64,000 nt of DNA from Orbicella franksi (lineage: Eukaryota). Position 1 is the first letter of the stretch. Every line of letters starts with the position of its first letter. Under the pieces are notes generated by a model. The model was not told the origin of the DNA, searched no databases, and saw only the letters and a list, made by a program, of their open reading frames with translations. Positions 401 through 5,831 of the stretch are shown one piece after another. A program made the position numbers and the translations under genes. Where the stretch lies: positions 16,802,001 through 16,866,000 of the forward strand of contig OZ116702.1 in the NCBI GenBank assembly GCA_964199315.1, given 5' to 3'.

Positions 401-1521
401 CTGATATTGTTAAACTGAACACGTGTATGCTCTTTTATGATTATTTCCACCATGATAAGTTTCCTAATTTACCTGTTTCATTAGTATCTGAACTACATAA
501 TTACAGTACCTGTAGTGCATCATCCAACCAAGTTGCAATACCTTCATTTCGCACTAATCTTAGGAGATTTTGCCCCAGCATTATTGAAAGTTTCTTTTGG
601 AATAATTTTCCGCAATCCATTAGAGACAAACCATCTAAAAGAACGTTTAGAAAAGCACTTTTACGCTGGTACCTTCTTCAATACTAATGAAAACATTATC
701 TCTTTATAACTTTCTGACCTATTTCGTCATTTTTCCTCTTCTTTTTCTTTTTTTTTATTAATAATCTCAAGTTATACATAACTTTTAGGGGTACAAAATT
801 AGTTTATCTAGATGTGCCCCTCTTCTCTCCTTCCAATATATAATGTAATTCAATTTAAGGTGGCTCTATATAGTATTTCACAAAGCTTTGGATATTAAAT
901 ATGCATAAGTAATTTCTCCCTTGGCAAATGTTTACAACATAGCACTCGGTAGAAGGTCAATAATAAAAAACCTACAGCCTTAGGCTACGTATGGAAGACA
1001 CTTTCAGAACCTAAATGTTGTTGCTATGGTAACTACTGATAGAAATGCTTGGCTTGTTTTTTTAACCTGCCTGACTTCTAGACGGTGTTTCTAGGTTTCT
1101 ACACGGTGAATTTTCTTTGTTTTGGGGGAAACACAGTTAACACACAAGGAGTTTCAACTGACAAAGCTACAAGAAAATCTGTACATAATTTTCAGAGGAA
1201 TTCGCAATTTTCGTTTTTTACGCATATTACATTAACGTATGTATAACAGCGAGAAAAAGAAAAATCCTATCCATGTGCCAATTTTCAAAAAAATTCACCG
1301 TCTGGAACTCGCTTAATATGCGTTTTAGATCACCCAAAGACCCCTGTATTTTCGTGACGTCATCAAAATAGAAATTCTTCAAGTTACGGTACTGTGCATA
1401 CTCACGTTTCGCTTCCTTCGCACATGCTAGTTGAAAATTAGTCGAGATGTAGAAGCTTATTTTTCCCCACGACGGCGAAAAGTATACCTAATAAGTGTTG
1501 TAATACTTATGGAAATGCGTT

Positions 1522-2685
1522 TTAACTTGTGGTTTCCTCCACTGCTTTGAAGTGCTCAACGATCTTGGCTAGAATACGGGTTGTTTTTGTCACTCGTGGA
1601 GCCTTGCTAGTTGCTGACGATGGAGGCAGAGACAATACGCCAACAAGCCCTTTTGCTCCGAACTTGTCGAAAACATTCTTAAGATCTCGATATGAAATGC
1701 CACTTCCGGCTATTTTTTCAGCAATCTGTTGCTTGATGGGGAATTCCGCGTTTGTTGGATGATAAAGCGTTCCTCGGAACGTCTGCAGGAGTTTGTAGCG
1801 ACGATCAAGGTATTTCATGTCGTTTTCTGCGTACTGTGTTGTTGACATGTTCTCTGTCAACATGTCCTCTGAAATGTTCAAACGGGAGTCAAAGACTATT
1901 CTTCTTAAAGCTCTAACATCCTCCATTGCATCGTGTGCAGGGAAAGGCTCATGGAAAAGTGTCTGATAAATGGATTGTTGATTTAATTTAACTGTGGAAC
2001 CATCCGGTAAGACCAGAGAGGGATGTTTACGTTTGACCAAGTTCTTCATCACAGGGAGAGTGTCGGAAAAGAAAACGTTAAGACAGGAAAGCTTTTCACA
2101 AAGTTGATGTCCACCTTGACGAAGAAGAGTTGGATTATCGAAAACCTGAGAGTTGTGCCCGATTAAAACAGTATAAATATTATTATCGCCTTTCACATGC
2201 TTGACAGTTTTCTCCAAGTAGGTTAGAAAATTTTCGAGTGACTTTCCAAGTGACACAGTTTCGACTGGTTGATTGTTTTTGAACAGGGTCCTGACGCCGC
2301 TGACTGTTCGGACACTTAAACCATTTACCCTTGTAGCATGAATATCTACATCCCTCAAAGGTAATATATAGTCGTTGAAACAGTGCAAACCTGATTGATC
2401 AACTGCTGAGAGCTGGCATATTTCTGCGGTTTTTCCAGACGTGTTTGTTTCAATATCGTAAATGATGAAATTGTAAACAGTGTTTCTGTCATAGGGAAAT
2501 TTCTCCGCCACTGGTCTGATCGTTAATTCAGGAATGCATGTTTCAAAGTTTTTCAGCTCCTCACTTGAAATTTTCAAATTGATGATGTCGAATTCTTGGA
2601 TCAGTTTGGTAGAATTGTTTGGATCCAGGTTAAGTCCTATTCCACTTTGGTATGTGTTTCCTTCCTTAGCTTGTTTTTTACCATC
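1522..2685 (-). CDS. DEDDh 3'-5' exonuclease domain (TREX/exuperantia/PML-like family), C-terminal part of the transposase fusion
   Basis: ExoI IIYDIETNT, ExoII GHNSQVFDNP and ExoIII AHDAMED motifs are all intact. The frame stays open upstream of the called start to about 2697 (NLDGKKQAKEGNTYQSGIGLNLD). Confidence 0.85.
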   Translation of the reverse strand, partial: DGKKQAKEGNTYQSGIGLNLDPNNSTKLIQEFDIINLKISSEELKNFETCIPELTIRPVAEKFPYDRNTVYNFIIYDIETNTSGKTAEICQLSAVDQSGLHCFNDYILPLRDVDIHATRVNGLSVRTVSGVRTLFKNNQPVETVSLGKSLENFLTYLEKTVKHVKGDNNIYTVLIGHNSQVFDNPTLLRQGGHQLCEKLSCLNVFFSDTLPVMKNLVKRKHPSLVLPDGSTVKLNQQSIYQTLFHEPFPAHDAMEDVRALRRIVFDSRLNISEDMLTENMSTTQYAENDMKYLDRRYKLLQTFRGTLYHPTNAEFPIKQQIAEKIAGSGISYRDLKNVFDKFGAKGLVGVLSLPPSSATSKAPRVTKTTRILAKIVEHFKAVEETTS

Positions 2686-2694
2686 AAGATTTAT

Positions 2695-2978
2695 TTTTTA
2701 TCTGCACGGATATTATTGTACTGTAGGTCAACCTTAACAAGTATTGCACTTGTCAGTATTGTAAGTAACGTGTATTGTATGTAAGTAGTAAGTAGTCTTT
2801 TTAATTAATTAATTAATTGATTGATTAATACAATGTAACTTATTGTAGTGTAAGTAATGTAAGTAATTGTATTGTTAGTAATTATCCAGTAAGTGATGTA
2901 GGTAATTGTCCCATAAGTAATGTAAGTAGTTGAACTGTAAGTTGTTTTTTTTCCCTGTGTTTTGCAATAAAAAAAAAA
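2695..2978 (+). mobile_element. 5'-truncated non-LTR retro-insert (LINE 3' UTR with AATAAA and poly(A)) with a 9-bp TSD
   Basis: AAGATTTAT at 2686-2694 and 2979-2987. The insert is (TGTAAGTA)-rich and ends gcaataaaaaaaaaaaa. Removing it plus one TSD copy restores the reading frame. Confidence 0.85.
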
Positions 2979-4394
2979 AAGATTTATCTTCTGCTTATGT
3001 AGTTGAGCTCTTCGGCGTTTGAAATTAATGCTGTTTTTTCTTAGTTTGTCTTGGGTAGCCTTGTGATCCATCCTTTCAATGTAGCTGATACAGTGTATAC
3101 CAGGTTCAATGTTGAGGCTCTCAAGTGTTTGGCTAATGTACTGATATCCAAGGTTTACTTGCGAGATGCCACAGGCCACTCGGAAGTCATTACTTTCACT
3201 TCCACCATAGTATCTGATTTTGGGATTTTTTGAGCCTATAACACTGTTTAGGGCCTCATTTCTCTGCGAATTTGACCCAGGTGATAACTTTGCAACTACT
3301 ATGTCAGTACAATATTCATCAAAAATTCTCTCCAAAGCTTTCCTTAAGTCATCGCCATAGAGATCTTTGCCATAGGGTAAGTCAGAGTGTTTATAGTTAA
3401 TGGGGTCTTTCTTGGCACCACACCATGATTCATTGCAATTTTTGTGGTCTCCAAACGAATGTGGTAGAATGCTTTTTAAGGATTTTTGAAGTGCTGATGG
3501 ATTTCCCTTATTTTGAGACACACTATAAGTAAAACATTTGACCAAGTAGTTGATAACTTTCTGTGAGAGAGTTGATGAATTTACAAATTTCCCACGTTGG
3601 CTTAGGTTATACAGCCTTGTAGTAAGGGATCTTTTGGCATGCACAATGTCTGTCCACTTTTCTACAGGATAAGGGACCTTCTCTTTTATATGTGCAGCTG
3701 TTGTGGAGTCTTCATCCCCGACATAAACAGATAGTTTGACTTTAGAATTTAGGCTTTCAGTGAACAAATGGACTGCTGCCATAGGCTCCATTGCTTTTGA
3801 TGATGCTGTATGATTGAGTTGGCAATTGTGTTGCTTGGCTTGTTTTCCAGTTTTTTTAGCATTTGTGCAAACCCTGCAGGATTTTGTTCTTGTAGTGTAA
3901 TCCATAACCTTCCCATAAGTTAAACCCATGACTGCAGCATGACTGGTTGAAGAGTTATGCCCCTTTCCCCGTTTTTGCCAACCCATGTCATATGAGCAGG
4001 GGATATTGATGCAGCCTTGGTCATCTGCTTTTACACCCTTTTTGATGGCAGCATTTCTTTCTTCTGACATTGCAGTTTTGCAACTTTTCTTTGTTACTTG
4101 CTCTACTGCATGTCCAATCTCATTTTCTCTACTCTTGAAAGTTACTGGATTCATAGAGGGAATATTTAATGTACACAGTAAATTATTTAGGTGGGTTTCA
4201 CCGATTCCTGTATGTAGACACCCAAGAACAGCTCTTGAATTAACATCCTGACTGAGTGGACCTCTTTGATCGCTCCTGTGTTCATTGGAGGTCTTGACAA
4301 CATTCTCTGTACCACACACTGCACAGGTAACTGAGAACACTGAGGCTAACCCACATTTTTTTTCCTGCTGTTATGTTCCACAATGACAAATTGG
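2979..4394 (-). CDS. DDE transposase core (Kolobok; 'Mutator-like transposase' domain type), exon 3
   Basis: Motifs SYDMGWQKRGKGHNS (D), YVGDEDSTT (D), DIVHAKR and SQRNEALNS (E), plus CxxC and HxC zinc motifs. AG acceptor at 4396-4395. There is a 1-nt frameshift in the A8 run near 4356-4363. Confidence 0.85.
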
Positions 4395-4866
4395 CTGCAA
4401 ATAAAGTGAATATATTGATACTCAGGAAGATCTGATACTTTGTTCTGGCAGTGTGTTTTCTCCTTTAATTTGGAATAAACGAGCACAAGTAAATTTTTGC
4501 AAAAACTAACAACATTTCAAAATGCAGTGAATGCAATTTGTGGTCTGTGGCAAATTTACAACTGCTTGTTTGTTCCAAATTTATCAAAAACATTTTTGTT
4601 GCTCGCAATAGACAAACAATTGTGTGACGCTTGTTATAGGGAACTTGCCCAAAAATTTAAGGACCAAGACTTTTTATGGCTGATTGCATATGAGACGTTT
4701 TGTAATGTATTGAAGATATACATGTATTATCAACCTCATAATTCTTTTTTGGAAACCTGTTAATTTTATAGCCTTAAAGCTGTGTGTACTTGCCATAAAA
4801 CTGAGAATTCATTTTGACTTTTCTTTAGTGTTGATTTTCTTTAGGCAGAAAAATGTTTCTTCTCAC

Positions 4867-4966
4867 CTGCTTTACAGTGTTGACAACATTTCAATGAACT
4901 TCTCAAAACATCCAAGTCCATAATTCTACTTCCATGTGGAATGCAATTTTCCTTCTTTGTTTGTTT
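4867..4966 (-). CDS. Transposase exon 2 (KQTKKENCIPHGSRIMDLDVLRSSLKCCQHCKA)
   Basis: 100-nt exon bounded by AG (4968-4967) and GT (4866-4865). Phase 0 in and phase 1 out match exons 1 and 3, and it carries a CxxC motif. Confidence 0.7.
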
Positions 4967-5230
4967 CTGATAAAAATTTAAAACTTCTACATTTTAATGG
5001 TAATTATTAGGTTGTAACTGTAACAAAAAATGTTGGAATTTTAAAATGAAATGTCAGAATGTTCAGGTATAATTATGTTGACAATTTGCTATGAGCTACC
5101 TGTGGTATAATACAAAAGTTCAAATTGAGAACTATTTCAGAGCAAAGAAAGTCTTGATGAAGCACTTGTCTTAAAACTTTTAGGGAATTGCTTGGTGCCA
5201 CGAATAGCGAAAACAAGATTTAAACCATAC

Positions 5231-5497
5231 CTGACTTAAACGGGTTTCTCTTTTCTTCGGTGGGGACCAATCTTCGACCATTCCTTGAAACTCCAATTTC
5301 CTCTTTGCCCTCCACTCCTTTATCCCACGAGTCCTGTCGTCCGTGTTTCCACTTTGAGCGGGTTTCTTTCTTGAGAACCGACCCTTCTCGTCACGCAATG
5401 GTGGTTTTGTTTCTGGTGTCAGTTGCGCCGTTGCAGACTCTTCAGCTGTTTTTGGTGTTTCATCGCCCAGGGAACTCAAAGCGAAGCCTCCGACCAT
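5231..5497 (-). CDS. Putative transposase exon 1 (basic, low-complexity N-terminus)
   Basis: Part of ORF 5180-5668, with a phase-0 donor CAG|GTATGG at 5231/5230. The start codon choice (MVGGF) is uncertain. Confidence 0.55.
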
Positions 5498-5831
5498 AAA
5501 AAGTACACCGTGACCACTCTGTGACTTCCTTCGCGTATGATCACGACCGTCTTCTCTCTCTGATGTCGGCATGATAAGTGCTGCGAATTGGCTTCTCAGT
5601 TTAACCACGTCAGGAGAACACGAAAGAAGTGTATTTTTAAACATTTCTAGGCGTTTTTTGATGAACACTTGTTCTGGTCAAAAAGGATAGCGGTAAGTGG
5701 AACGCGACTCGCGATAAAAGTCTCGCCACCATGTTTATTTTTGTTTTTTACTTTTCTTTTAAATACTCGCGCGCTCGCGCCATTCGCACCCATGCCTCGC
5801 GCGCCAAAAAAACTATATAGAGCCACCTTAA

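Follow-up and report, generated by a model that had tools for sequence, protein, structure and literature searches.

The 64,000-nucleotide stretch of Orbicella franksi DNA analysed here (contig OZ116702.1, positions 16,802,001 to 16,866,000; C5:16802001-16866000 in our search; hereafter the window) contains at 859-5827 a DNA transposon of 4.97 kb, or 4.70 kb without a retroposon lodged in it, whose sense strand is the minus strand. We consider it very probable (about 0.9) that what lies here is an inactivated copy of a young KolobokD transposon, once autonomous, with a fused transposase-exonuclease. Natural copies of the element show that this fusion is a single selected reading frame. Transposons of the kind have already been published (KolobokD, PMC9587614) and at most the family may be new, as was allowed in an earlier note written from the letters of this DNA.

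The fusion in natural copies and relatives

In the window, the transposase and the exonuclease appear as two open reading frames (ORFs) divided by stop codons and 285 bp of foreign sequence. The earlier note had joined them by removing the insert in silico; the in-frame fusion is now seen in natural, uninterrupted copies instead. A search of the coral's own genome (497 Mb) gave 85 matching places; at least seven of them are nearly complete copies, 97-98% identical. Of the other full-length copies in the genome, at least five are 97.8-98.8% alike, and five retain both 16-bp ends with TTAA on both sides, in unrelated flanks. The insert is missing from all other copies of the transposon. Frames running unbroken from transposase to exonuclease measure 787 amino acids (aa) in L033, 700 in L031, 524 in L035, 473 in L032 and 464 in L036, and each of these copies has lesions of its own: a 2-bp deletion in L033, a 2-bp insertion in L031, two 1-bp deletions in L035, a 1-bp insertion in L032 and two in-frame stops in L036. 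The majority consensus of six genomic copies has an intact open frame of 882 codons through exon 3. Copies with the exonuclease missing, or placed in a separate ORF, had been named beforehand as evidence against the fusion; in the five copies just listed the exonuclease is in frame with the transposase.

The same arrangement was found outside this genome. L041, a complete relative on a European Nucleotide Archive (ENA) contig with 93% DNA identity, has the same ends and TTAA, and lacks the 285-bp retroposon; in its exon 3, an intact frame of 860 aa holds all three Pfam domains. L042, which represents a more distant family (69% protein identity), shares the 3' end and has a frame of 864 aa. A protein search added 116 relatives, most of which unite PF20700, an exonuclease family and PML_C within one chain; their sources include Oculina, Montipora, Acropora, Paramuricea, Actinia, Saccostrea, Mercenaria, Leptopilina and Hypothenemus. 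The one-protein fusion occurs in corals, an octocoral, bivalves and insects. P0105, P0106 and P0110 are deep-branching fusion proteins. Taken over these predicted proteins, the fusion is established as ancestral to the family and common to several phyla. The linker between the two parts reads KRRR...EGxTYxSxIGL in the family and KRRR followed by EGxxYxSxxGL across phyla, and its conservation from cnidarians to insects points to one ancient fusion event.

The apparent fusion could be peculiar to this copy or an artefact of assembly, with a host exonuclease gene lying beside a transposase or with ORFs that have nothing to do with each other. This would explain the divided ORFs of the window, but the division is a private retroposon insertion, and the unbroken frames in other copies, L041, L042 and proteins of several phyla refute this reading, which we regard as next to impossible. 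A domesticated host gene was also considered and rejected.

An estimate of the ratio of nonsynonymous to synonymous substitution rates (dN/dS) for the exonuclease had been suggested earlier as a check. Between the majority consensus and L041, dN/dS is 0.18 in the transposase and 0.20 in the exonuclease; the C-terminal domain has 0.05 and exon 1 has 0.47. Purifying selection on the exonuclease equals that on the transposase.

Classification as KolobokD

By the published definition, a Kolobok transposon duplicates TTAA, has 5'-RR...YY-3' termini and encodes a DDD/E core that contains zinc fingers and C/DxxH (PMC9587614). In the element described here, GGTGGCTCTATATAGT stands in sense orientation at one end and recurs as its exact reverse complement at the other, making perfect 16-bp terminal inverted repeats (TIRs) with the terminal bases GGTGG...CCACC, bordered on both sides by TTAA (Table 1). 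These TIRs and the TTAA target-site duplication, already described for the window, also occur in other copies and in L041; TTAA was found on both sides, in unrelated flanks, in the window, the five full copies, L041 and the deletion derivatives L043 and L045. Together with RR...YY ends and the core motifs, these features agree with the assignment to Kolobok made in the earlier note.

Table 1. Features of the KolobokD element in the window (positions as in the window)
Feature	Position	Strand	Remarks
TTAA target-site duplication, sense 3' side	855-858		Read in window; recurs in other copies
3' TIR, 16 bp, ending CC	859-874	-	Identical in other copies, L041 and L042
3' untranslated region (UTR) and subterminal region	875-1521	-	Conserved blocks; 21-bp private deletion; no second gene
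Exon 3, distal part: linker, exonuclease, PML_C	1522-2694	-	Pfam, PDB matches, AlphaFold2, Foldseek
Poly(A) retroposon, 285 bp, opposite orientation, private	2695-2979	+	Splits transposase-exonuclease linker
Exon 3, proximal part: Kolobok DDE transposase	2980-4394	-	Pfam PF20700 at 3420-4337
Intron 2	4395-4866	-	GT...AG
Exon 2, 100 nt	4867-4966	-	First CxxC of N-terminal zinc motif
Intron 1	4967-5230	-	GT...AG
Exon 1, ancestral ATG 5731-5729	5231-5731	-	Basic N-terminus, weakly constrained; 2-bp private deletion near 5643
5' TIR, starting GG	5812-5827	-	Read in window; recurs in other copies
TTAA target-site duplication, sense 5' side	5828-5831		Read in window; recurs in other copies

The name KolobokD was given to the Kolobok lineage whose elements encode a DEDDh (DnaQ) exonuclease; molluscs, arthropods and cnidarians are the hosts in which it was found (Kojima and Bao 2022, Mob DNA 13:24, PMC9587614). 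Its exonuclease was likened to Exuperantia (Exu), TREX and ERI1, and a CCHC zinc finger downstream of the first catalytic D is a criterion of the lineage (PMC9587614). Our element has the exonuclease in the transposase frame and the CCHC finger after the first D. It shares with KolobokD the TTAA, the RR...YY ends, the DDE core with DxxH and both zinc fingers, a DEDDh exonuclease similar to Exu and TREX, and the host groups. Nothing differs in kind; 16-bp TIRs, three exons and 4.70 kb describe the present family, while the PML_C domain and the closeness to Plex9 are not mentioned in the KolobokD paper (PMC9587614).

The core motifs agree, motif by motif and by eye, with the rows Kolobok_1_ADi_1p and Kolobok_1_CGi_1p of Data S5 of PMC9587614. 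In Kolobok-1_ADi of Acropora digitifera, SYDMGWQKRG, CR.C...HDCRKN, GDDDSTT, SDIVH.KRS and PHAFGDH..C...WC match our element when compared by eye with the printed text, and these motifs are almost identical to those of P0012, a fusion protein 52% identical to the present family. Kolobok-1_ADi is a separate family, at about 50% protein identity. KolobokE, KolobokP and KolobokH likewise combine a Kolobok transposase with a DNA-processing partner domain or gene; their partners are a PD-(D/E)xK nuclease, a His-Me nuclease and a RecQ helicase, whereas here it is a DEDDh exonuclease. A second gene of the KolX type, reported earlier as not visible, is indeed missing from the element, and the 3' region of about 650 bp holds short conserved blocks instead.

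The transposase part

Pfam PF20700 ('Mutator-like transposase') matches the frame window:2808-4340:- with E 6e-92. In the numbering of window:2982-4340:-, the predicted catalytic residues are D118 (codon 3987-3989), D209 (3714-3716; alternatively D211) and E362 (3255-3257). DIVH at 231-234 (3639-3650) represents the DxxH motif, and H294/H299/C302/C307 (3420-3461) the H/H/C/C finger; all of these are conserved in the family alignment. The CCHC finger, C155, C158, H171 and C173 (3822-3878), lies downstream of the first catalytic D. An AlphaFold2 (AF2) model of the transposase, with a predicted local distance difference test (pLDDT) score of 85, is nearest to the IS256/Mutator-type transposase of ISCth4, followed by P element, Transib and Hermes.

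The proximity to the ISCth4 fold explains the Pfam name 'Mutator-like'. Kolobok is related to MuDR, P and hAT, and both the name and the modelled fold reflect this deeper kinship. They could also be taken, together with the TTAA that piggyBac duplicates as well, as signs that the element is a piggyBac or a Mutator/Mutator-like element (MULE) rather than a Kolobok. We find this very improbable. The ends are GG...CC, in contrast to CCC...GGG in piggyBac, and PF20700 was the sole transposase match in Pfam, with no piggyBac transposase domain found; every copy has the 4-bp TTAA, as opposed to the duplications of about 9 bp (8-11 bp) made by MULEs, and the core motifs match those of the curated Kolobok-1_ADi and Kolobok-1_CGi.

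The exonuclease and PML_C part

Searching window:1525-2697:- against Pfam gave Exu_RNase_H_like (2.4e-7) and PML_C (3.7e-8), both exceeding the curated cut-offs; for PML_C the scores were 33.9-34.9 bits against a cut-off of 27.1. The exonuclease extends over about 1852-2478 and the SAM-like PML_C domain over 1546-1737, with the stop codon at 1522-1524. In the numbering of the same frame, D81 (2455-2457), E83 (2449-2451), D187 (2137-2139), H255 (1933-1935) and D260 (1918-1920) form the pattern D-x-E, D, H-x4-D, so that the five catalytic residues reported earlier are all present. In 31 sequences each is either invariant or conserved to at least 90%, and they align with the catalytic residues of the matched chains in the Protein Data Bank (PDB).

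When the family profile was compared with the PDB, it matched 9L8B at 6e-49 and zebrafish Plex9.1 (9MRC and 9MRD, PMC13659232) at about 1e-40, and more weakly Exuperantia (6e-16), PolC exonuclease (8e-14) and TREX1 (about 1e-5). An AF2 model of the exonuclease has a pLDDT of 89, and Foldseek ranked Plex9.1 first (template modelling (TM) score 0.85), then Exu with its exonuclease (EXO) and SAM domains, then TREX1 and TREX2. These matches and models argue for a DEDDh 3'-5' exonuclease of the Plex9/PML type with a full set of catalytic residues and predicted activity; the PML-like type named in the earlier note agrees with the Pfam PML_C and the Plex9-type PDB matches.

Among known systems, Plex9.1, the fish TREX4-type proteins and the C-terminal exonuclease of PML-I are the best match (profile E 1e-40 to 6e-49, TM 0.85, 27% identity). 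In PML-I, PML_C follows the exonuclease, as it does here, and all DEDDh residues are present in the Plex9.1-type match. Plex9 and PML are single-copy vertebrate host genes without a transposase, and human PML has lost the catalytic residues, all five of which our element keeps. Exuperantia (PDB 5L80) has the same EXO-like plus SAM-like arrangement and is the second-best PDB match (6e-16; Foldseek alignment of 334 columns), but it is an RNA-binding pseudo-exonuclease, whereas the active site of our element is complete. The C-terminal domain of the element matches Pfam PML_C; SAM_Exu was not listed among the matches.

Splicing and the ancestral product

The three phase-compatible GT-AG exons proposed before stand, with splice sites read directly: GT follows the end of exon 1 at 5231, exon 2 (4966-4867) is preceded by AG and followed by GT, and exon 3 starts at 4394 after AG; the first intron is in phase 0 and the second in phase 1. 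Between the majority consensus and L041, exon 3 diverges by 4.2% with no insertion or deletion (indel) in 2,573 nt, and exon 2 by 2.0%. Intron 1 shows 12.5% substitutions and 6 indels, and intron 2 shows 9.7% and 8 indels (14 indels in 741 nt). Exon 1 diverges by 9.6% and has one in-frame indel. In BLASTP, residues 10-37 of the Oculina patagonica protein P0006 align to exon 2 and those from residue 41 onward to exon 3, exactly colinear with the proposed splice.

The protein would run from a basic N-terminus through a CxxC...CxxC motif spanning exons 2 and 3, the Kolobok DDE core, the conserved linker and the DEDDh exonuclease to the SAM-like PML_C. Exons were searched individually. No Pfam domain was found in exon 1, whose RDEKGRF motif occurs again in the bivalve proteins P0108 and P0112. 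Exon 2 alone gave no Pfam match because it is too short, and its support is the BLASTP colinearity with P0006. The ancestral protein comprised about 1,000-1,060 aa; the figure of about 1,060 is an arithmetic sum of exons (168 + 33.3 + 858.7 codons) with the ATG at 5731-5729. A single ORF of about 980 aa had been estimated previously; the joint transposase-exonuclease frame holds, and the ancestral length is greater, the lower estimate probably having used a local ATG created by a deletion in exon 1.

Inactivation of the window copy

The deletion in question removes 2 bp near 5643. The ancestral ATG thereby loses its frame, and another ATG arises in frame (MFKNT...), through which the broken copy seems to have a shorter, intact start. 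The extra A noted earlier lies in a sense-strand A-run at 4356-4363; it shifts the frame and is missing from other copies. As to the retro-insert, its presence was noted correctly, and its size is 285 bp rather than 284. It carries AATAAA and poly(A) on the plus strand, is flanked by an 8-bp duplication, AGATTTAT, at 2687-2694 and 2980-2987, and belongs to a dispersed repeat of about 277 bp, whose further copies number at least 18 and are 91-97% identical. This family is probably akin to short interspersed elements (SINEs) and was probably active after the Kolobok burst. Four lesions private to the window copy have thus inactivated it: the 2-bp deletion, the extra A, the retroposon and the loss of 21 bp from the 3' UTR.

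Past activity

The element was cut and pasted into TTAA and was formerly active, as follows from its young copies and from the TTAA-flanked deletion derivatives L043 (G000:C14:12288432-12291952) and L045 (G000:C11:6827954-6831285). Deletion derivatives, to which L044 (G000:C9:20524521-20528044) also belongs, are 3.1 and 2.9 kb long; they have lost about 1086-2678 of the consensus, that is, most of intron 2 and the DDE core, and retain the transposase end, the exonuclease and both element ends. L043 and L045 have a common 3' breakpoint and TTAA flanks at different loci. Being TTAA-flanked without a DDE core, they show mobilisation in trans. Identity to the consensus is 93-94% over the 5' 1.1 kb of the derivatives and 98% over the remainder, and this step suggests a recombinant between subfamilies.

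Several points have to be set against our reading of the locus. No fully intact copy was found in the coral's own genome among the copies examined. The splice model and the single product are predictions drawn from canonical sites, the pattern of conservation and colinearity with a predicted Oculina protein. The assignment to KolobokD was made by features and by motifs matched by eye, and the rows in the supplement of PMC9587614 are unlabelled as KolobokD. Finally, the role of the exonuclease is a conjecture.

As a locus, the copy is routine, a further decayed member of a published lineage, and its description helps repeat annotation of this anthozoan genome.

Possible roles of the exonuclease

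A tethered exonuclease would act in cis on transposition intermediates, where it would trim 3' ends or flaps at excised ends, donor gaps or target gaps, and such trimming would let joining and repair finish. Of the functions suggested in the earlier note, which were trimming of intermediates, donor repair and anti-retroelement cargo, the trimming has also been proposed for the KolobokD exonuclease by Kojima and Bao (PMC9587614). We give about even odds to the view that the enzyme processes the DNA ends of transposition intermediates, because the tether is conserved, both domains are equally constrained and sister Kolobok lineages carry other DNA-processing partners there.

Alternatively, the exonuclease may be cargo with a task like that of TREX1, gar PML and Plex9, namely the removal of cytosolic or reverse-transcribed DNA, and would thereby restrict rival retroelements or keep excised transposon DNA hidden from innate DNA sensing. 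In favour of this, no catalytic residue has been lost, and the nearest characterised relatives are Plex9.1-type enzymes, which restrict LINE-1 and complement TREX1 loss (PMC10123124). However, the exonuclease is covalently tethered by a linker conserved from cnidarians to insects, its dN/dS is the same as that of the transposase, which suits selection via transposition success over a host-level benefit, and a PD-(D/E)xK nuclease, a His-Me nuclease and a RecQ helicase occupy the same position in other Kolobok lineages (PMC9587614). We regard a cargo function as rather unlikely. Less likely still, by a wide measure, is a catalytically silent nucleic-acid-binding module serving targeting or localisation, like Exuperantia or the PXL of human PML; it shares the EXO plus SAM-like arrangement common to Exu and PXL, but these two have lost the DEDD residues (PMC13659232), whereas the present family keeps all five in 31 sequences.

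Relation to Plex9 and PML

The closeness of the EXO plus PML_C module to vertebrate proteins raises a tentative lead. Vertebrate PML, in its C-terminal exonuclease, and fish Plex9/TREX4 may derive from the module of KolobokD or have it as their nearest surviving sister, which we see as a possibility with the odds against it. Read as a capture, this would mean that a Kolobok transposon supplied PML exon 9 when jawed vertebrates arose; we hold this to be equally doubtful. The idea arises because the profile matches Plex9.1 far better than Exu or TREX1, because PML_C stands in the order seen in PML-I, and because of nesting in a tree: the fish TREX4/Plex9-type protein P0221 (Conger conger, 212 aa, too short to contain PML_C) falls amid transposon-fused exonucleases in a tree of 51 rows with supports of 86-92, and an approximately unbiased (AU) test against placing it outside gave p = 0.03. 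Cnidarians, molluscs and insects commonly carry the module, whereas PML is said to have arisen in jawed vertebrates (PMC10123124).

This link is a lead and not a result, and what counts against it is that it depends on one vertebrate sequence of odd composition and on a clade named post hoc. Stand-alone invertebrate EXO-PML_C genes are an equally possible source, and we saw no KolobokD element in a vertebrate. The papers on PML/Plex9 and on KolobokD do not mention each other's family (PMC10123124, PMC13659232, PMC9587614), and our literature search found none that links Kolobok to PML/Plex9; yet among characterised proteins each module has its best relative in the other. The lead is that the C-terminal exonuclease of PML and the fish Plex9 genes share a family with a transposon-borne module common in invertebrates. 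If phylogeny bears this out, PML would join the vertebrate genome-defence genes built from transposon parts, and the family would be one in which to study the use of a 3'-5' exonuclease by a cut-and-paste transposase.

Flanking and subterminal sequences

Immediately outside the element, a 155-aa ORF lies at 220-687 on the plus strand; we presume that its C-terminal part resembles the ORF2 tails of long interspersed elements (LINEs), and a Pfam search of 220-684 gave no match. Elsewhere in the genome, G000:C3:16381199-16450277 holds many partial copies of the element inside 70 kb with recurring breakpoints, and looks like a segmental or tandem duplication containing the transposon.

The 3' subterminal regions were compared between the window (875-1521), L041 (L041:5000-5686) and L042 (L042:3011-3706). 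Conserved blocks, including GTTGCCATAGCAAC, which is palindromic, and ACGGTGAATTTTTTTGAAAAT, are kept even against L042, where synonymous sites are saturated. A further conserved block, ACGGTGAAT, has an inverted second occurrence about 200 bp off (1097-1117 and 1287-1307 of the window). Judged by this conservation, the blocks are possible candidates for transposase-binding or regulatory sites.

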